Of a stretch of DNA of 64,000 nt, positions 2,714 through 52,904 are shown one piece after another; within the stretch, counting starts at the first letter, position 1; each line of letters opens with the position of its first letter. This DNA comes from Macrostomum lignano. Taxonomy: Eukaryota. The position numbers were made by a program, and so were the translations under genes. The DNA lies in contig NIVC01002257.1 in NCBI GenBank assembly GCA_002269645.1, positions 62,001 to 126,000 of the forward strand. Direction: 5' to 3'. The notes below the pieces were generated by a model. It worked only from the letters and a program-made list of their open reading frames with translations, was not told where the DNA came from and ran no database searches.

Positions 2714-5265
2714 ATGCCACAGATGGCAGCCTGCGAGTCGGCTGCGCCGCCATTCTCGCCTCTGACTCTATTCGAGTCGACAATTACCAACGCCCAGATG
2801 CTACTGGAGTCCATGGCCGAACGAGAACTGTTCACCGCTATGCGCATTGTCGCCTGTCTGCATTCCCAGATGCTGCAAGTGATGGAGCCACGGTTTGGCC
2901 GACTGTGCGATCGAAGCGATCAGCTGGGCCTGCTGATTGACTCTGACCCATCCGCTGCTGGCCGGAGCTCTGGGCAGCAGCAGCAACAGCAGCAACCGGG
3001 TCAGACCTCTAATCAGCAGCAACAGCAGCTGCAGGGCAGTCAGCAGCATCGAACCAAGGCTGATCCAGATGCCGGCGACGGAGTTCTTGGCGCTGCCCTG
3101 TGCGCCATCAAGGTAACTTGATTAATCAGTAGAATTACCACGGGAAATGAAATAAAAAACTGAAGCTTTTTATCGCGACTAGGCAGACATTAGAAACTGC
3201 ACACTCAGTCATGCTTTAAAGCCATTAGGCGGACATTAGAAACTGCACACTCAGTCATGCTTTAGAGCCATTAGGCGGACATTAGAAACTGCACACTCAG
3301 TCATGCTTTAGAGCCATTAGGCGGACATTAGAAACTGCACACTCAGTCATGCTTTAGAGCCATTAGGCAGATATTAGAAACTGCACACTCAGTCATGCTT
3401 TAAAGCCATTAGGCAGATATTAGAAACTGCACACTCAGTCATGCTTTAGAGCCATTAGGCGGACATTAGAAACTGCACACTCAGTCATGCTTTAGAGCCA
3501 TTAGGCGGACATTAGAAACTGCACACTCAGTCATGCTTTAGAGCCATTAGGCGTACATTAGAAACTGCGCACTCAGTCATGCTTTAAAGCCATTAGGCGG
3601 CTGTATGAAAAATCTCCCCCTTTCCAGGCGGACCCGGATGATTCAACCCGCCGATCCCTGCGCCCCCTGGCCGACTCCACCGCCGCAGTCGCCGCTGGCG
3701 CCACCCCCGAGGACGCCGACGATGAAGAGGAATTAGAAGAAGAACTCGAAGAGGAAGACGAAGAGTGCGTCATCATGGCTGCCACAGCTGCCGAGGAGGC
3801 CGAGTTTGCAGCGTCGACTGCCTACGGCGGCTATCATCATTCCCAGCATCCCCAGCTTCATCATCCGCAGCAGCAGCAGCCCGTTCCCAAGATTGCCCGC
3901 TACGATTTCTCATTAGGCGCCTCCTCGTCGGCCTCCTCCCTAGCCGCCATTGGTGGCGACGTGCCAGCCGAGTGTAAAACTGTGATGCGCCGGGCCTACA
4001 AAGCTTTGAAAGGCGCCGGGCCGCATCTGTTCGATTTTAGTCAGCCGTGAGTGTCCGTCCGGTTTGAAATTTAATGCCATAATACCCAACTGTCTTCAGG
4101 GTTTTTGTATTTCTTCGAAACCGCAAGTCTCGTGTGTTTCCTGAAAACCGCAAGTCTCGTGTGTTTCCTGGAAACCGCTAGTCCCCTGTTTCCTGGAAAC
4201 CGCTAGTCTCCTGTTTCCTGGAAACCGCTAGCCTCCTGTTTCCTGGAAACCGCTAGTCTCCTGTTTCCTGGAAACCGCTAGTCTCCTGTTTCCTGGAAAC
4301 CGCTAGTCTCCTGTTTCCTGGAAACCGCTAGCCTCCTGGGTTTCCTGGAAACCGCTAGCCTCCTGGGTTTCCTGGAAACCGCTAGTCTCGTGTTTTTCTC
4401 AGTCTCATATTTTCTTGGAAACCTTTAGTCTCATGTGGTTCTTGGAAACCCCTGGTGTCATGTTTCTCAGAAACGGCTTGTCTCATGTTTATTGGAACTG
4501 TCTCATGTTTATTGGAACTGTCTCATGTTTATTGGAACTGGCTCGTTTGTTTCCTGGAAACCGCTAGTCATGTGTTTCCTGGAAACCAGTAGTCTCGTGC
4601 GTTTTCCAGTTTCATATATTTTGAAAATCTCTATAAGTTTAAAATTCTTCAATGAACCATTAAAAAGGTAGAAAGTCCCGAGTATACTCCTTAATTAATA
4701 TATTCATGCACATTATCGAACCCTTGCCGCCGCAGTTTCGGAGCCGATGTCAATCAGCGAGTTGCCGCCCAGGTGATGACCAAAGCCAAGGAGTTGGCCA
4801 TAGGCAAGGGCTGGCCAGATGACATCTGGCAAAGTGAGTGTCGCTAATATTTGTTATTCAATTTGCTTTATACTATTAGTAGCATATCCATTGTGTTTTA
4901 ACAATTGTCCTGGAAACGTCGCAAGTTCTCACCTTTTTATAGTCACTTGTGTCTCATTCTTTCACCAATTGTCCCACTTGGTCATATCTGCACTTTTCAT
5001 GCCTACCTGTAACGCTCTTGTGCGTTGTTGTTCGTTAAAAGGTTTTCAAATTATTCGTTCTCTCAAAACAACGCGATATGCTGTCAATTTTGCAGCGCAT
5101 TTGTCATTTACAGTGGCATTGACTTGTATGATCATTAATTATCTAATTAACTGATAACTATATGAATCTCTGCTATGGCTAACTTTCATATAAATTTTAA
5201 TTGATAAGCCCGTTTTTATTAGATCTTCAACATGGGTGTAGATAGATAGATATATAGATAGATAT

Positions 5266-5335
<70 letters not shown>

Positions 5336-5336
5336 G

Positions 5337-5395
<59 letters not shown>

Positions 5396-5396
5396 G

Positions 5397-5480
<84 letters not shown>

Positions 5481-5499
5481 GATAGACAGATAGATAGAC

Positions 5500-5530
<31 letters not shown>

Positions 5531-5531
5531 C

Positions 5532-5590
<59 letters not shown>

Positions 5591-8500
5591 CAGATAGATA
5601 AATAGATAGATAGATAGATAGATAGATAGACAGATAGATAGATAGAATAGATAGATAGATTCATAGAAAGCTAGATAGACAGACAGACAGATACATGGTC
5701 ATGGTATTGTCACAGATAATTGCCGTATAAATGCAGTAAACTCAACGTCGCACACCAGAGCGAGCCACGAGCGAATCCAGTGTACTTAGCTGGCCCAGTG
5801 CAAATGCTTTAAAAGTTAAATGCCGGCCTCTTCCAACTGCCCTTGCATTGTCCCTTTCTCTTTGCTATCTTTAACTGTTAAAACAGGCTTGCCAAAGAGG
5901 AGCAGACTAGACATGATCTTCCTCACCTTTAAGCACAATAATAAGCAGCGAAGTAAATTGTTCGTAAGTCCGCTCGATCTGCTTTTGTCTGCTGCGCGGG
6001 TAAAACTGCTTTTTTGACCAGCAACAATTTTTGCTCCAGAATCTTGATTTGCAATAGGCAATTTTGGTTTTGATCTTGTTTTCTTGTCGGCCTCGTGGGG
6101 CGACGATGTAAGTTTTTAATTGGTAGCTAATTGCTCAGGTAGTTTTATTTCGTAGGTAATTGCTCAGGTAGTTTTAATTGGTAGCTAATTGCTCAGGTAG
6201 TTTTAATTGGTAGCTAATTGCTCCGGTAGTTTTATTTGGTAGATAATTGCTCCAGTAGTTTTAATTGGTAGCTAATTGCTCAGGTAGTTTTAATTGGTAG
6301 ATAATTGCTCAGGTAGTTTTAATTGGTAGCTAATTGCTCCGGTAGTTTTATTTGGTAGATAATTGCTCCAGTAGTTTTAATTGGTAGCTAATTGCTCAGG
6401 TAGTTTTAATTGGTAGATAATTGCTCAGGTAGTTTTAATTGGTAGCTAATTGCTCCGGTAGTTTTAATTGGTAGCTAATTGCTCAGGTAGTTTTAATTGG
6501 TAGATAATTGCTCCGGTAGTTTTATTTGGTAGATAATTGCTCCAGTAGTTTTAATTGGTAGCTAATTGCTCAGGTAGTTTTAATTGGTAGATAATTGCTC
6601 AGGTAGTTTTAATTGGTAGCTAATTGCTCCGGTAGTTTTATTTGGTAGATAATTGCTCCAGTAGTTTTAATTGGTAGCTAATTGCTCAGGTAGTTTTAAT
6701 TGGTAGATAATTGCTCAGGTAGTTTTAATTGGTAGCTAATTGCTCCGGTAGTTTTAATTGGTAGATAATTGCTCAGGTAGTTTTATTGCCCTTGTTTTAA
6801 TTCGAGTCTAAGTTAGTTACTTATCTATAGAAGCTTGTGACGTTTCTTTAATTAATTTATAATTAATTAGATAGTTAGTAAGACCAATAAGGCAAAACGG
6901 AAGGTAAACTCGCCGTTAAACTTGCAGGCCTACCGCCTGTGTGCCGTTTGTCGACTGTATTCTCTAAATTGCGATTCGATATTCGACGGAATTATAAATT
7001 TAACGTAAGATTAATTAGGATTCAAAGCAGGGAAGATTTTCGTAATTTCCAGTCTTGAATAAACATTGTTTTAGTTCTTTATTATTTTATATTTTAATTG
7101 TTTCTCCAAGCATTAATTGCTTACAACTTGTGACGTTTCAAATCAGTTCCTGTCGAAAAAGTTCTGCATTTTAAAATGATTAACAATAATTTTTTCTATG
7201 CAATGTTTTTTTCTAGGAATTGCCTACAAATATCGTATAGATGGCATTTTTAGTCATTTTCGGACCAAGGCCAAGTCTAAATATCGGGAAATCGTAAGCC
7301 AAAATAATGCGCCTCTGCTACTACTCACAACTACGATATGTACTGTGTGTTGCGTGTACTTTTGTGTTACATTGTAAACGGCGTTTATTTGATGCTCGCC
7401 GTGTCTAAATCATAGGGTTGATATTAAGCTGTGGCCAAGTATTGGGATGAGATTAAGCCATGTTTGAAATCATAGGGGTGAGATTAAGCTGTGACCAAGT
7501 ATTGGGATGTGATTAAGCCATGTTTGAAATCATAGGGTGAGATTAAGGCATGTTTAAAATCATAAGGGGTGAGATTAAGCCATGTTTGAAATCATAGGGT
7601 GAGATTAAGCTGTGGCCAAGTATTGGGATGAGATTAAGCCATGTTTAAAATCATAGGGTGAGATTAAGCTGTGACCAAGTATTGGGATGTGATTAAGCCA
7701 TATTTGAAATCTTAGGGGTGAGATTAAGCTGTGACCAAGTATTGGGATGTGATTAAGCCATATTTGAAATCATAGGGTGAGATTAAGCTGTGACCAAGTA
7801 TTGGGACGTGATTAAGCCATATTTGAAATCATAGGGGTGAGATTAAGCTGTGACCAAGTATTGGGATGTGATTAAGCCATATTTGAAATCATAGGGGTGA
7901 GATTAAGCCATGTTTAAAATCATAGGGTGAGATTAAGCTTTGTTCAATCACACGGATAGGATCAGGCCTTGTCTTAATCCTTAGGGTTAGATTAAGCTGT
8001 GCCCAAATAGAGTGAGATTAAGCCATGCTTGAATAATTGGGATGAGATTAAGCTTTATTATTTATTTTTTTTCTGAAAAGTCTCCGACCGTGAAGGTGGG
8101 ATTGCTGGACGAGCTGGCTGGCAGAGCCAACTGCAATTTGCGACGTTTTCAAGAGCCAGTCCGAAATCCAAGAATTCCCTAATTAATCTCCTATTCAACG
8201 TATTTTCAGAGATGCCCTACACATCAAAAATAGTTTACTTATTTTCAAATTTTCGCGCTAAAATGCGCATCAAACTGAGGAACTCTGTAAGCTAATCATG
8301 TCATGCAAGTTGTTTTTTTATTTCTAGAAAAATCTCCAATCTCCTACTGACAGTAGAGTCATAAAGACACGGAGAACTCGCGCTCGTTTTTTGAGACAGT
8401 GAAATATGTACTATTATTTAATTAATAGTAATATATGTACTGTTGCTTTGCAATCAATTTAATACAAAATCTCGTAGGACTTCCTTGCGACAGTCGGATA

Positions 8501-11500
8501 AAATATTTGCACGCAAATTTTGGCGTGAAAATTCGCGCTAGACACAAGCAGAAAGTGAGTATACTTATTAGAGCGATATGGAGAGTTCAATGGTCCGAGG
8601 GAGACTGAGTGTGAGCGGGAGGGAGACTGAGTGTGAGCGGGAGGGAGACTGAGTGTGAGCGGGAGGGAGACTGAGTGTGAGCGGGAGGGAGACTGAGTGT
8701 GAGCGGGGGGGAGACTGAGTGTGAGCGGGAGGGAGACTGAGTGTGAGCGGGGGGGAGACTGAGTGTGAGCGGGAGGGAGACTGAGTGTGAGCGGGAGGGA
8801 GACTGAGTGTGAGCGGGAGGGAGACTGAGTGTGAGCGGGAGGGAGACTGAGTGTGAGCGTGAGGGAGACTGAGTGTGAGCGGGGGGAGACTGAGGGCGGG
8901 AGGGAGACTGAGGGCGGGAGGGAGACTGAGGGCGGGAGGGAGACTGAGTGTGAGCGGGAGGGAGACTGAGTGTGAGCGGGAGGGAGACTGAGTGTGAGCG
9001 GGAGGGAGACTGAGTGTGAGCGGGAGGGAGACTGAGTGTGAGCGGGAGGGAGACTGAGTGTGAGCGGGAGGGAGACTGAGTGTGAGCGGGAGGGAGACTG
9101 AGTGTGAGCGGGAGGGAGTCTGAGTGTGAGCGGGAGGGAGACTGAGTGTGAGCGGGAGGGAGACTGAGTGTGAGCGGGAGGGAGACTGAGTGTGAGCGGG
9201 AGGGAGACTGAGTGTGAGCGGGAGGGAGTCTGAGTGTGAGCGGGAGGGAGACTGAGTGTGAGCGGGAGGGAGACTGAGTGTGAGCGGGAGGGAGTCTGAG
9301 TGTGAGCGGGAGGGAGTCTGAGTGTGAGCGGGAGGGAGACTGAGTGTGAGCGGGAGGGAGACTGAGTGTGAGCGGGAGGGAGACTGAGTGTGAGCGGGAG
9401 GGAGACTGAGTGTGAGGGAGACTGAGTGTGAGCGGGAGGGAGACTGAGTGTGAGCGGGAGGGAGACTGAGTGTGAGCGGGAGGGAGACTGAGTGTGAGCG
9501 GGAGGGAGACTGAGTGTGAGCGGGAGGGAGACTGGGGTGAGAGGGAGGGAGACTGAGTGTGAGCGGGAGGGAGACTGAGTGTGAGCGGGAGGGAGACTGA
9601 GTGTGAGCGGGAGGGAGACTGAGTGTGAGCGGGAGGGAGACTGGGGTGAGAGGGAGGGAGACTGAGTGTGAGCGGGAGGGAGACTGAGTGTGAGCGGGAG
9701 GGAGACTGAGTGTGAGCGGGAGGGAGACTGAGTGTGAGCGGGAGGGAGACTGAGTGTGAGCGGGAGGGAGACTGAGTGTGAGCGGGAGGGAGACTGGGGT
9801 GAGAGGGAGGGAGACTGAGTGTGAGCGGGAGGGAGACTGAGTGTGAGCGGGAGGGAGACTGAGTGTGAGCGGGAGGGAGACTGAGTGTGAGCGGGAGGGA
9901 GACTGGGGTGAGAGGGAGACTGAGTGTGAGCGGGAGGGAGACTGGGGTGAGAGGGAGACTGAGTGTGAGCGGGAGGGAGACTGAGTGTGAGCGGGAGGGA
10001 GACTGAGTGTGAGCGGGAGGGAGACTGAGGGCGAGAGGGAGACTTGAGGACGAAAGGAAGAGGGGTATTGAAATGCATATTAAAGGTGAGGATAATAATA
10101 GTCAAGAGGAGGACAGAGAAATGAGGGAGAGATGGTAAGTGAAATGGGTTTTATTAATAAAGAGTCCCACAAGACAAACCGTTGAGTCGGTCAGAAGCGG
10201 CCGTACAGTCTTATCCAAGCTGATGGTGGTCCTAACCTGCTCATTGCCAAACTAACCGAAGAATCGCTATTCGCTTCCTCACAACTGCCACAGAAGCTCA
10301 GCCGTCGCCAGCGCAGCTTCGAACTGGTTGCCACCAGCCTCAGCACTGACGAATTGGAGAAATTCCGGGTTATTCTCACCCGGGATTACACCAGCTCGGA
10401 TGAGGAGTGCGGCTCCGGCGGCTCCGACCAGCTGCGGGTGCGCGAGCTGCCTTGGGAGTCTGATGAGGTAAACTATGCGCTATTTAGGTCTTTGTGTCTG
10501 CTCTGTAGGTCTTTGTGTCTGCTCTGTAGGTCTTTGTGCCTGCTCTGTAGGTCTCTGAGCCTGCTCTGTAGGTCCTTGTGCCTGCTCTATAGGTCTTTGT
10601 GCCTGCTCTGTAGGGTCTTTGTGCCTGCTCTGTAGGTCTTTGTGCCTGCTCTGTAGGTCTGAGCCTGCTATGTTGGTCTTTGTGCCTGCTCTGTAGGTCT
10701 TTGAGCCTGCTCTGTAGGTCCTTGTGCCTGCTCTATAGGTCTTTGTGCCTGCTCTGTAGGGTCTTTGTGCCTGCTCTGTAGGTCTTTGTGCCTGCTCTGT
10801 AGGTCTGAGCCTGCTATGTTGGTCTTTGTGCCTGCTCTGTAGGTCTTTGAGCCTACTCTGTAGGTCTTTGTGGCTGCTCTGTAGGTCTTTGAGCCTGCTC
10901 TATAGGTCTTTGTGGCTGCTCTGTAGGGTCTTTGTGCCTGCTCTATAGGTCTTTGTTGCTGCTCTGTTGGTCTTTTTGTCTGCTATGTAGGTCTTTGTGC
11001 CTGCTCTGTAGGTCTTTGAGCCTGCTATGTAGGTCTTTGTGCCTGCTCTGTAGGTCTTTGAGCCTGCTATGTAGGTCTTTGTGCCTGCTCTGTAGGTCCT
11101 TCTCTGTGTCTGCTATTAGGTCTTTGTCTGTGTCTGCTCTAGAGGTCTTTGTGCGTCTGCTCTGTAGGTCCCTGTCTGTTGGTCTATTCTCTAGCTTTTC
11201 CCTCCGTTCGTCAGTATCTGTATGTTAGTCAGTGTTTTTCTATTGATATTTACATGTCCATATTTTGTCTGACCACATCCTAATCATAATCCTAATCCCG
11301 GCAGGTAAAGCGGCTGAAGCGCCAGCTGGACCAGGTGTACGCCGACAACTGCGCCACTACCAAGCAGCGCCAGCAGCTGGCCAAGAGTATCAGAGACCCG
11401 ATGCGGGCCAGGTCGCAGCGCCCGCCGCCTGAGGGCGCGCCAGACTGGGCATTGAAACCCGCGCCGTCCTCGCCAACTGGCGCCTCGGCATCGGGAGCGC

Positions 11501-11508
11501 GTCGTTAA
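2714..11508 (+). CDS. Paralog B, C14orf93-like putative DNA-binding protein; exons 2714-3112, 3628-4046, 4736-4833, [one of five 77-nt exons], 10294-10467, 11305-11508 (~456 aa)
   Basis: All listed introns are GT..AG with consistent phases (0, 2, 1, 0, 0). N-terminal poly-Q and poly-E tracts, followed by FDFSQPFGADVNQRV...KGWPDDIWQ and the conserved C-terminal block shared with exon 40-435. AATAAA at 11515-11520. An extra short exon between the cassette and 10294 cannot be excluded. Confidence 0.8.
3180..3600. repeat. 46-bp minisatellite, about 9 copies, filling intron 1 of paralog B
   Basis: Unit taggcggacattagaaactgcacactcagtcatgctttagagccat. Confidence 0.95.
4120..4600. repeat. ~25-bp minisatellite (tttcctggaaaccgctagtctcctg) in intron 2 of paralog B
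   Basis: gaaacc recurs at 4171 and 4196; core units contain TTCCTGGAA. Confidence 0.9.
4913..4927 (+). promoter_or_regulatory. Candidate splicing docking site GAAACGTCGCAAGTT, about 80 nt downstream of the constitutive exon-3 donor
   Basis: Its reverse complement AACTTGCGACGTTTC recurs, with only G:U-compatible changes, at 6832-6846, 7125-7139 and 8135-8151, each upstream of an alternative exon. Confidence 0.75.
5240..5690. repeat. (GATA)n microsatellite
   Basis: More than 100 GATA/GACA units. Confidence 0.97.
5887..5963 (+). CDS. Alternative exon 4A, 77 nt: (S)LPKRSRLDMIFLTFKHNNKQRSKLF
   Basis: aaacag|GC...TTC|gtaagt; phase 1 to 0; no stop. Confidence 0.85.
6115..6790. repeat. 29-bp minisatellite (aattgctcaggtagttttaattggtagct), about 23 copies
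   Basis: Direct reading. Confidence 0.95.
6832..6846 (+). promoter_or_regulatory. Candidate selector for exon 4B (AGCTTGTGACGTTTC)
   Basis: 15-bp pairing with 4913-4927 including 2 G:U; ends about 80 nt before exon 4B. Confidence 0.7.
6928..7004 (+). CDS. Alternative exon 4B, 77 nt: (S)LPPVCRLSTVFSKLRFDIRRNYKFN
   Basis: cttgcag|GC...AAC|gtaaga; phase 1 to 0; no stop. Confidence 0.85.
7125..7139 (+). promoter_or_regulatory. Candidate selector for exon 4C (AACTTGTGACGTTTC)
   Basis: 15-bp pairing with 4913-4927 with 1 G:U; ends about 78 nt before exon 4C. Confidence 0.72.
7217..7293 (+). CDS. Alternative exon 4C, 77 nt: (R)IAYKYRIDGIFSHFRTKAKSKYREI
   Basis: tttttttctag|GA...ATC|gtaagc; phase 1 to 0; no stop. 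Confidence 0.85.
7405..8052. repeat. Compound ~30-bp minisatellite (gagattaagcc/gctgtg...aaatcataggg)
   Basis: About 20 recurrences of gagattaag/gtgattaag. Confidence 0.9.
8135..8151 (+). promoter_or_regulatory. Candidate selector for exon 4D (AATTTGCGACGTTTTCA)
   Basis: 17-bp pairing with 4911-4927 with 2 G:U; ends about 60 nt before exon 4D. Confidence 0.72.
8210..8286 (+). CDS. Alternative exon 4D, 77 nt: (K)MPYTSKIVYLFSNFRAKMRIKLRNS
   Basis: tattttcag|AG...TCT|gtaagc; phase 1 to 0; no stop. Confidence 0.85.
8478..8554 (+). CDS. Alternative exon 4E, 77 nt: (R)LPCDSRIKYLHANFGVKIRARHKQK
   Basis: atctcgtag|GA...AAA|gtgagt; phase 1 to 0; no stop. Confidence 0.85.
8598..10035. repeat. 22-bp minisatellite (gagactgagtgtgagcgggagg), about 65 copies
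   Basis: Direct reading; source of spurious ORF 8459-10105. Confidence 0.97.
10485..11170. repeat. 21-bp minisatellite (ctctgtaggtctttgtgcctg) filling the last intron of paralog B
   Basis: Direct reading. Confidence 0.93.
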
Positions 11509-12891: not shown

Positions 12892-19203
<6,312 letters not shown>

Positions 19204-50934: not shown

Positions 50935-51987
50935 TTAGGAGCGTCTGGAAGGACAGCAGAAGAAGCAACAGCGCCCCGATTCGAGCTCTCTATTACGCAT
51001 TTCCGCATGTTCCCGACGATGTCTTTCAAGAGCTAATTCCGCTTCCTTAACTCTTAGGTCAGCATTGTGCCGCATTTGCCTAATATCAGGTGGGTTGTTG
51101 CGTTGTTCGAAATCTTCTCGTCGCCACCTTTGTTCTTCGAAAGAATTCGGTTGGTTCAAGACAACTTGAGGATTGTTTTGAAAATTTTGTCGATGCTGCT
51201 TAACAGAATCTTTTTCCTCTTCAGTTTTTCTTGCTACAGCTTCAGTACCTTCCATCACTTTTTCGATCTGGTCTCCTAGACCGTCGAGGTCTCGCAAAGA
51301 GGTCTTCAAGTCGTTCTGTAGGTCTGCAAACTCATTGGCCAGCTTGTCCAGACTGCCTGCATGACTGCTCGTGTAGGCGCCAGTACCAGCGGCTGCGGTA
51401 CCCAGTGCCGCTGCTCCCACACCGCCCAGGACTCCTCCAGTGGCGACAGTTAAAATCAAGCCGGCCACTACTAAGAGTCCTGTTGCCGTGTAGCCGACAG
51501 CTCGAGCATTTCTAGCACTCGAACTCGCTTCCTCCGCCGCTATTCTGGATCGCTCGCTAAGATCTGTGTTTAGTCTCACCGCTTCTTTCATGTGCTCCTT
51601 AAAAAAATTGTATTCCTCGTAAATTTCCGCTGCTTTTTCTAGCATCTCTTGTAGCTGTCGAATGATCTCTTCGTATTGATTTGACTGTACTTGCCTCGCC
51701 ACAATAGGGTTCCTATCCCTGTTGAACTCGAACCGGTTCCACTTGCTCTGAAGTTCGTTGCAAAGTCGCTGGAATTTGTTGGCAGATGATTTTGTCGTTT
51801 TTAGAACGTCTTCATATTCGGCTGCTAGTGCACTTTCGATACTTGCGGCCTCTTTGCTAAGCTTCATCAGCACTTCTTGTGCCCTGCTAGTCACCTCTAC
51901 AACTGTATTAACCAGTAAATTGGCTGCTTCGACCATCTTTCCGGCTATTCCAGCAGATGTGACGAGGTTTTTGCCAAATTTCTCCAT
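50935..51987 (-). CDS. 350-aa APOL/ClyA-like helical protein 1 with a central hydrophobic hairpin and C-terminal CCFFCC
   Basis: Intronless CDS; hairpin TATGLLVVAGLILTVATGGVLGGVGAAALGTAAAGTG flanked by coiled coils; probable 5' UTR intron 52135-52297. Confidence 0.85.
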   Translation of the reverse strand: MEKFGKNLVTSAGIAGKMVEAANLLVNTVVEVTSRAQEVLMKLSKEAASIESALAAEYEDVLKTTKSSANKFQRLCNELQSKWNRFEFNRDRNPIVARQVQSNQYEEIIRQLQEMLEKAAEIYEEYNFFKEHMKEAVRLNTDLSERSRIAAEEASSSARNARAVGYTATGLLVVAGLILTVATGGVLGGVGAAALGTAAAGTGAYTSSHAGSLDKLANEFADLQNDLKTSLRDLDGLGDQIEKVMEGTEAVARKTEEEKDSVKQHRQNFQNNPQVVLNQPNSFEEQRWRREDFEQRNNPPDIRQMRHNADLRVKEAELALERHRREHAEMRNRELESGRCCFFCCPSRRS

Positions 51988-52904
51988 ATTGATGATGTGG
52001 TAAGCGGTAATATTTTTATTTCAAACGGTTCCGAATCCGATAAAATTGCTCGGCTCAGTTTTGAAAATATTTTCTTTTATAGTTTCATCGTCTTGGTCGT
52101 CAAGCATCAAATCTTCGTAAACTCGGCGTAATCGCTAAATTTAGAAGGAAACATTAGTTTTCTCTCTGTAACTAGTCTACAGTATACCTAAGCAGCTTCA
52201 AAATTTCCCTTTTTGTAAAACATTTAGACCAATTTGTTGTACTTAAAATTTAGCTCAGTACCTTATATACTGTACAGAATGGCTGGTGCGTACTTACCTG
52301 CTGATTACTTAATCTGAATTTGAAACCATCCGTACTACTGTACGAGTATAAGTAGAAAGCCTTTAGTACGTTCATTCCATGGCTGCAGAAATTTTACTTA
52401 ATCCTTTATCTTTTATTTTTCCAAGGCCATTTTCTTGATTCCCTGAGGTTCTACCCTTTAAGACCCTCGGCAGCTTTATCTTAACTTATTTTACACGGAG
52501 GTTTTTTCGATGCTTTGCTTTGCAAGCATGGTTTGGTCCTTTTTAGAGCGATAATTTTTATTCGAACAATACGCTCGTAACAGTTCGCTTTGAGTTTCCA
52601 GCAGTTTTGCTACGAAGGACTGCAGCGCTTATAGAATTCTTGGCGAAGTTCCCTTTCGTATTTACAGATTTGGACGTACAATTGAATTTGTATCTCCGTA
52701 GAGGCTTCTCGAAATATAAGCGAGAAACAAAATAATAATAAACCGAAGTGCATATGGCTGTACGGTATTGTGAGACCAGACTGATAGTGGGTTTAAGATT
52801 TCATTTCCTTAGCTCAGGTTAGCTTTCTGACGCGCGTGTATATTCGTGTCGGTTTCTTACAAACCTCTTTTTACTCACTCGGCTTTAGTGTCTTGGATAG
52901 AAAA

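Follow-up and report, generated by a model that had tools for sequence, protein, structure and literature searches.

The choice of a single exon from a tandem array through competing RNA pairings is best documented in arthropod genes, for example Dscam1. In the model for Dscam exon 6, a docking site follows the upstream constitutive exon and a selector precedes each variable exon (PMC6071210). Competing intronic pairings likewise select one homologous exon in insect 14-3-3 zeta, Mhc, MRP1 and srp and in human ATE1 (PMC6071210, PMC4691838, PMC7797038). Here we analyse a 64,000-nucleotide (nt) stretch of the genome of the flatworm Macrostomum lignano (contig NIVC01002257.1, positions 62,001 to 126,000; hereafter the window), in which a gene related to C14orf93/RTFC carries five neighbouring 77-nt exons, cassettes a to e. 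We put at roughly 70% the probability that these form a tandemly duplicated, mutually exclusive cluster from which one exon is chosen through docking/selector pairing. Like exon 6 of Dscam1 in insects and crustaceans, the cluster consists of tandem homologous exons with a putative docking site just past the upstream constitutive exon; the selectors are complementary to the same docking bases, so that their pairings would be mutually exclusive, and the docking site is better conserved than the intron around it. What appears to be new here is a set of putative docking/selector elements in a flatworm C14orf93-like array, with a layout that suggests Dscam exon 6. The literature we searched contained no report of an exon array in C14orf93 and no paper on selector sequences together with flatworms.

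We started from an initial annotation of the window, made from the letters alone, which had proposed five alternative exons of exactly 77 nt. Their coordinates were confirmed (Table 1), as was their fitness for inclusion one at a time: they are neighbours of equal length, homologous to one another, entered in phase 1 and left in phase 0, with YAG acceptors (CAG, CAG, TAG, CAG and TAG for a to e) and GTRAG donors (GTAAG in four, GTGAG in one). All are open in the frame set by exon 3 (phase 1), four of them in that frame only and cassette b also in frame 0. Joining the proposed exons gives a conceptual protein with 96% identity, along its entire length, to "hypothetical protein BOX15_Mlig018137g1" from M. 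lignano. Within the resulting six-exon gene model (2714-11508, plus strand), any single cassette yields an open reading frame (ORF) of 456 residues with one terminal stop. A frameshift had been predicted for zero, two or three cassettes, and indeed all 27 non-single combinations (none, or two to five) stop prematurely. The 77-nt length thus puts a wrong number of cassettes out of frame and provides a second safeguard. Steric interference and U12-type incompatibility were considered as mechanisms of exclusivity and rejected, as the introns between cassettes are at least 191 nt long and all splice sites are of the U2-type GT-AG class.

The encoded peptides align to one another without gaps. Over 26 cassettes from four paralogues, positions L2, P3, R7, I/L8, I11, F12, F15, R16, R20, K/R22 and R/K24 are conserved, in keeping with the proposed consensus, and define a common scaffold, x-L-P-x-x-[SG]-R-[IL]-x-x-[ILMV]-F-x-[DN]-F-R-x-K-x-R-x-[KR]-x-[RK]. 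A profile hidden Markov model of the cassettes, run against six frames of the window, found exactly these five (E 1e-10 to 1e-13; next best E>1); since the model was built partly from the same five, their own scores are inflated and the informative part is that there were no further matches. Neither this profile nor a scan for the pattern AG-77 nt-GT revealed additional cassettes in the 64 kb. In the intron that holds the cassettes, chance has produced four further instances of the pattern with an open frame, so the weight of the argument lies on homology and the shared scaffold, not on the splice dinucleotides.

The intron that follows exon 3 contains the putative docking site. Its core CTGGAAACGTCGCAAGT, extended by TCT (4910-4929), is identical in the equivalent introns of two array-bearing paralogous loci, L003 and L004; each locus, like the 64-kb window, has a single copy, and L002, the paralogue with one 77-nt exon, has none. 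Across the three array-bearing paralogues this block of 17-20 nt is conserved far above its intronic surroundings. It also emerged from an unbiased scan in which every 25-nt window of the first intron was scored by its median pairing energy against the 200 nt upstream of the cassettes: the docking element was the top pairing window in each of the three loci separately, and the optimum in the window gene was -24.45 against a background of -9.25 (standard deviation 2.7).

The reverse complement of the docking element lies 48-79 nt upstream of the acceptors of cassettes b, c, d and e. One shared stretch, TTGYGACGTTTY, has four occurrences in the 64 kb where 0.01 are expected, one antisense at the docking site and three sense, before b, c and d. 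Pairing was evaluated with RNAduplex, using as controls 100 dinucleotide shuffles and 1500 genuine 200-nt windows from other parts of the 64 kb; energies and control frequencies are listed in Table 1. When docking site and selector were joined by GAAA and folded with ViennaRNA, b to e gave stems of about 15-18 bp with z-scores of -4.1 to -5.4 (a, -0.8). All predicted duplexes cover the same docking positions, about 9-25 (GGAAACGUCGCAAGUU). Selectors of the GACGTTTCC type precede about 20 of the 25 cassettes of the three loci, mostly 56-91 nt upstream of the acceptor, with roughly 10 of 13 and 7 of 7 cassettes so equipped in the two paralogues. What the sequence establishes is the complementarity, the placement and the conservation of these elements. 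We found no downstream docking site: when every 25-nt window of the last intron was scored against the 200 nt that follow the cassettes, none of the three loci gave an outlier and nothing was conserved. Rfam recognised no known RNA family between 2500 and 11700.

Three paralogous genes were fetched, with one 77-nt exon (L002), seven (L004) and thirteen (L003, or paralogue B, and a near-identical copy, L007), and all of their cassettes are 77 nt long with AG/GT borders. The closest counterparts in paralogue B of the window cassettes run in the same order (a with B1-3, b with B4, c with B5, d with B6, e with B7), from which we conclude that the array is older than the gene duplication. Between paralogues the introns can be aligned only in a few very short blocks; the cassettes retain their length, their frame and their splice sites. 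For the five matched pairs together, the proportion of nonsynonymous differences (pN) is 0.315 and that of synonymous differences (pS) 0.72, with a pN of 0.04 in the adjacent constitutive exon; these figures are rough, the pairs having been picked by similarity. They suggest that the cassettes are under constraint, yet that their protein sequence changes roughly 8 times faster than that of the neighbouring constitutive exon. The last three of the thirteen L003 cassettes (16702-16778, 17902-17978 and 18147-18223) differ from the other ten in their GTAAT donors and in lacking a convincing selector, and may be under different regulation or in decay. On a related contig from another organism, L005 (ENA ERZ25070786), neither a cassette nor the docking motif was present within 10 kb.

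Products annotated on three near-identical genomic copies of the gene fall into the 90%-identity cluster of the best protein match. Two of them, P0001 and P0013, contain cassette c alone, and in P0014 exon 3 is joined straight to the exon at 10294, with a stop 18 codons later. The genomic copy bearing this skipped model, L006, retains all five cassettes, so the skipping is an outcome of splicing and not of deletion. The NCBI annotation of this assembly was presumably built from a transcriptome, and we therefore treat these products as transcript-derived models. No product with two cassettes was found among the NCBI gene models, and protein collections held no isoform of the window gene beyond the cassette-c and skipped forms. 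Of the earlier proposal of at least five isoforms, the five-way coding potential thus stands, while the annotated products of the gene show a single cassette. In paralogue B, P0020 holds only the 9th cassette and P0002 only the 7th.

We infer that the docking/selector duplex forms in vivo and decides splicing. As the selectors would compete for the same docking bases, only one duplex could form per pre-mRNA; it would loop out the upstream cassettes and draw the acceptor of the chosen one near the donor of exon 3, as proposed for Dscam exon 6. Cassette a, nearest to exon 3, may have lost its selector by decay and be a default or rarely used choice. Products with none or several cassettes would be removed by nonsense-mediated decay, and the remaining isoforms would differ in a partner-recognising surface, the partner being a nucleic acid or a protein. 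Several features set this scheme apart from Dscam1 exon 6. M. lignano belongs to the Platyhelminthes, and the gene is of an unrelated family encoding a non-Ig protein. The clusters comprise 5, 7 and 13 exons rather than 48, wrong numbers of the 77-nt exons also shift the frame, and the first cassette is without a good selector. A counterpart of the repressor hrp36 or of the locus control region was not identified. Insect 14-3-3 zeta, Mhc and MRP1 have their docking site downstream of the cluster, and some such genes use two-sided pairing, in contrast to the upstream site of the M. lignano gene. It is possible, and we suggest it tentatively, that flatworms evolved a Dscam-exon-6-style system independently, kept in three paralogues (5, 7 and 13 exons; 25 cassettes), which diversifies a basic-helix surface in the metazoan-wide C14orf93/RTFC family.

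Several observations weigh against this interpretation. The only direct products are annotation-derived proteins, which show cassette c or none, and a, b, d and e are not among them. Pairing of cassette a is no better than that of shuffles or random windows (55% of windows are as good), and the last three cassettes of paralogue B similarly lack a convincing selector. We found no element that would explain how the donor of the chosen cassette skips the later ones, and the structural model discussed below is only moderately confident over the cassette (predicted local distance difference test, pLDDT, 63-84). The annotated products would also fit a picture in which cassette c alone is real and constitutive and a, b, d and e are leftovers, no longer used, of former duplications of the exon: every annotated full-length product of the gene uses c, which has the best polypyrimidine tract, and the protein collection contains no other isoform. 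Against it, the exact length, the frame, the splice sites and the scaffold residues are intact in all five exons; for each of them a paralogue has a counterpart in collinear order, though the introns scarcely align, and pN is well below pS. Four of them also retain a selector at the expected distance, and the gene models of paralogue B differ in the cassette used. We give this explanation only a slim chance.

Alternatively, the exons may be exclusive but chosen by proteins or by frame policing through nonsense-mediated decay alone. In that case the 17-mer would serve as a splicing element bound by protein, or as an enhancer at the DNA level, and its complementarity to the upstream motifs would be a by-product of a duplicated ancestral intronic hairpin. 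The docking sequence is invariant among paralogues, so that there is no two-sided compensatory change to demonstrate pairing and the case for it is carried by repeated complementarity and conservation. The selectors, moreover, are related by descent, and part of their similarity could come from tandem duplication. A nearby conserved block (5133-5152) resembles a homeodomain-type DNA site and is found in neighbour genes without arrays as well. What makes us regard this alternative as unlikely is that, in three loci that diverged independently, nothing pairs better with the regions upstream of the cassettes than the docking element, and that the selectors, for all their differences in sequence, still form 15-18 bp with one set of docking bases. 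In addition, the element is missing exactly where there is one exon only (L002), and the same scan on the last intron gave no signal. Selection of one cassette through RNA pairing is our preferred reading of the array.

The initial annotation had gone further and read the cassettes as interchangeable recognition helices of homeodomain type, by which the isoforms would differ in DNA specificity. Cassette d does contain FSNFRAKMR, matching the FSNxRAKxR motif on which this idea was based, and the cassette segment is strongly basic and helical in the model. The motif is, however, missing from the other four cassettes, and across the 26 cassettes the "Asn" position is Asp in 12, Asn in 4, Ser in 3 and Thr in 2. 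When the invariant residues of helix 3 (W48, F49, N51 and R53) were considered, only d was similar. Non-flatworm homologues read YFxSLRDxxxR in this segment. Pfam returned nothing for the window protein at E<=10, whether homeodomain, BEN or any other helix-turn-helix or DNA-binding model, and nothing at E<=1 for ten further proteins of the family. Among PDB sequences a profile search found no relative, and a Foldseek search of the PDB with the structural model gave a best E of 0.45 and template modelling (TM) scores of at most 0.21, the top matches being unrelated helical proteins. Homeodomain likeness is thus limited to cassette d and breaks down at the residues by which helix 3 is defined, and the recognition-helix proposal as first worded is rejected; we hold it to be highly improbable. 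Binding of nucleic acid by the long basic helix is a possibility, and switching of DNA specificity is speculation. A BEN-like domain with the cassette as its last helix was also considered and dropped for want of a Pfam BEN, PDB-sequence or Foldseek match. The UniRef name "BEN domain-containing protein" on one relative was given no weight, because it is among names that clearly misfit their sequences.

The Drosophila genes lola, fruitless and mod(mdg4) swap alternative sets of 3'-terminal exons, encoding whole zinc-finger or FLYWCH domains, partly by trans-splicing. They had been offered as parallels, and the likeness holds in that one gene yields many isoforms differing in a putative recognition module. 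It is a loose one because an internal exon is exchanged here instead of a 3'-terminal set; what is swapped is a 26-residue internal piece of a helix, with no recognisable DNA-binding domain.

In an AlphaFold2 model made from a 32-sequence alignment, the C-terminal domain is predicted with mostly high confidence. In it, a break of two residues separates a short helix (residues 299-308) from a long, basic one (311-344). The cassette, residues 304-329 of P0001, would provide the end of the short helix and the first 19 residues of the long one. Conserved cassette positions are hydrophobic (8, 11, 12 and 15) or basic (7, 16, 20, 22 and 24) and about 13 others vary, a pattern that fits a fixed scaffold with a changeable surface.

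The description of the gene as C14orf93-like was borne out by hhalign, which matched the family profile (A2) with one of true C14orf93 (A4) at 95.8% probability (E 6.8e-9, 173 columns). The true orthologues (PF15394/DUF4616) had been retrieved with a query fragment that matched the chimpanzee protein at 100%. Shared with vertebrate C14orf93/RTFC/4931414P19Rik are the C-terminal ...YTDKELKGACVAYFLTKRREYR..., MSDEEDS, WVARxPRFR...L..LD and GPPSDRLPS. The N-terminal parts are unrelated to those of the flatworm proteins, and the Pfam DUF4616 model, which scores true C14orf93 at 707 bits, misses the flatworm proteins. Sequence comparison thus supports a distant relative, not an orthologue, and the relationship falls short of the threshold that Pfam sets. 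The counterpart of the cassette is ...ACVAYFLTKRREYRN... in C14orf93 and ...A..YF.SLRD...R in invertebrate homologues. An exhaustive profile search collected 346 relatives, with a large expansion in M. lignano, and including "uncharacterized" proteins of sea stars (Patiria, Acanthaster) and a mussel (Potamilus) as well as unnamed sequences; a name search by profile with a word-indexed tool gave six unnamed or "uncharacterized" proteins only.

C14orf93 has been implicated in thyroid differentiation (PMC5322522) and described as a secreted chemoattractant (PMC10163356). Our results single out one part of the C14orf93/RTFC proteins, a metazoan family, as the segment that is diversified in evolution and that is probably partner-recognising; in M. 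lignano both the many paralogues and the duplicated exons contribute to its variation. The results offer a lead to the function of the family, including the human gene linked to thyroid cancer susceptibility. If the tentative suggestion of an independently evolved system is correct, the cassette helix would be the specificity-determining element of the family, and M. lignano would provide a compact system for RNA-pairing-driven exon choice outside arthropods. M. lignano can be made transgenic. The locus is a small and clean example, with one 17-nt docking site, short selectors at a nearly fixed distance from the acceptor, and three arrays as natural replicates.

Table 1. Exons, cassettes and intronic elements of the C14orf93-like gene (window coordinates; B and C numbers denote cassettes of paralogues; energies are for pairing with the docking site)
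Feature	Position	Strand	Details
Exon 1	2714..3112	+	Coding sequence starts at ATG 2714 or 2723; identical to annotated P0001/P0013 except for their partial N-terminus
Exon 2	3628..4046	+	Agrees with P0001
Exon 3, constitutive	4736..4833	+	Terminus ...GWPDDIWQ plus one base (phase 1); donor GTGAGT
Putative docking site	4904..4932	+	Core CTGGAAACGTCGCAAGT at 4910-4926 (17 nt), 77 nt past exon 3 donor
Second conserved intronic element	5133..5152	+	CATTAATTATCTAATTAACT, palindromic pair of TAATTA motifs; lies past the docking site and before cassette a
Possible degenerate selector a	5756..5786	+	AGCGAATCCAG, compared with AGCGTTTCCAG in paralogue selectors; -16.2 kcal/mol
Cassette a	5887..5963	+	(S)LPKRSRLDMIFLTFKHNNKQRSKLF; closest in paralogue B, B1-B3
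Putative selector b	6829..6848	+	AGAAGCTTGTGACGTTTCTT; 79 nt before acceptor; -24.5 kcal/mol; as good: 0/100 shuffles, 0.9% of random windows
Cassette b	6928..7004	+	(S)LPPVCRLSTVFSKLRFDIRRNYKFN; closest, B4
Putative selector c	7124..7148	+	CAACTTGTGACGTTTCAAATCAGTT; 68 nt before acceptor; -23.6 kcal/mol; as good: 0/100 shuffles, 1.2% of random windows
Cassette c	7217..7293	+	(R)IAYKYRIDGIFSHFRTKAKSKYREI; in annotated P0001 and P0013; strongest polypyrimidine tract of the five
Putative selector d	8123..8161	+	Core TTTGCGACGTTTTCAAG, ~8136-8152; 48 nt before acceptor; -25.9 kcal/mol; as good: 0/100 shuffles, 0.3% of windows
Cassette d	8210..8286	+	(K)MPYTSKIVYLFSNFRAKMRIKLRNS; closest, B6 and C1
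Putative selector e	8371..8401	+	GGAGAACTCGCGCTCGTTTTTTGAGACAGTG; 76 nt before acceptor; -28.0 kcal/mol; as good: 0/100 shuffles, 0/1500 windows (<0.07%)
Cassette e	8478..8554	+	(R)LPCDSRIKYLHANFGVKIRARHKQK; closest, B7 (52/77 nt, 16/26 residues)
Downstream constitutive exon	10294..10467	+	Phase 0; encodes KLSRRQRSFELVATS...
Last coding exon	11305..11508	+	Includes stop codon; gene model

Besides the docking site and short matches to the selector motif, the second conserved element, CATTAATTATCTAATTAACT, is the only intronic block held in common with L003 (12635) and L004 (12015). It is found again at L001 5266, L003 5973 and L004 4106, in the upstream neighbour genes, and is therefore not specific to the arrays; possible roles are those of an enhancer of homeodomain type or of an RNA element. 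About 135 nt upstream of cassette a, at 5744-5752, nine nucleotides of the docking core, AACGTCGCA, recur in the same sense. This is the sole other copy in the 64 kb, perhaps a relic, perhaps an additional weak site for docking.

Minisatellites and microsatellites fill nearly all introns of the gene (4110-4395, 5239-5693, 6114-6785, 7407-7908, 8597-10041 and 10485-11170), among them TAGA repeated 113 times and a 22-mer repeated 67 times. Through these repeats the introns between a and b and between c and d exceed 900 nt; most inter-cassette introns of the paralogues are about 130-210 nt long. In the protein, an acidic run followed by C-[VLI]-[IL]-[MLI] at residues ~170-185 (~3760-3800, EEELEEEDEECVIMAATAAEE) is kept across M. 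lignano paralogues (DDDCLIMEED, DDDCCILDD and others); our impression from its sequence is of a SUMO-interaction-type motif. Many M. lignano family members (P0003, P0006, P0007, P0009, P0018, P0023, P0168 and others) carry UniRef names unrelated to their sequences, including Rab-GAP TBC, Exo70, Sec8, protein kinase, Ribosomal_L28e, BEN and CUT, which look like naming artefacts and carry no weight as evidence of function.

At its start (1-432), the window contains the final coding exon of a paralogue lying in tandem upstream, equivalent to the C-terminus of P0006. The same two-gene arrangement is seen at L003 and L004, which indicates that the two-gene block was duplicated. Elsewhere in the window, three intronless minus-strand ORFs of about 360 residues each (50938-52020, 58522-59625 and 62061-63131) encode otherwise uncharacterised helical proteins. 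The second and third are about 24% identical to each other (E 1e-11), and the first has a weak Pfam match to SctB2 (29.8 bits). A separate minus-strand ORF at 57054-57632 has a QRICH1-domain match below threshold. A fragment of a mariner/Tc1-type DDE transposase (Transposase_1, DDE_3) lies on the minus strand at 63390-63998 and continues past the end of the window.

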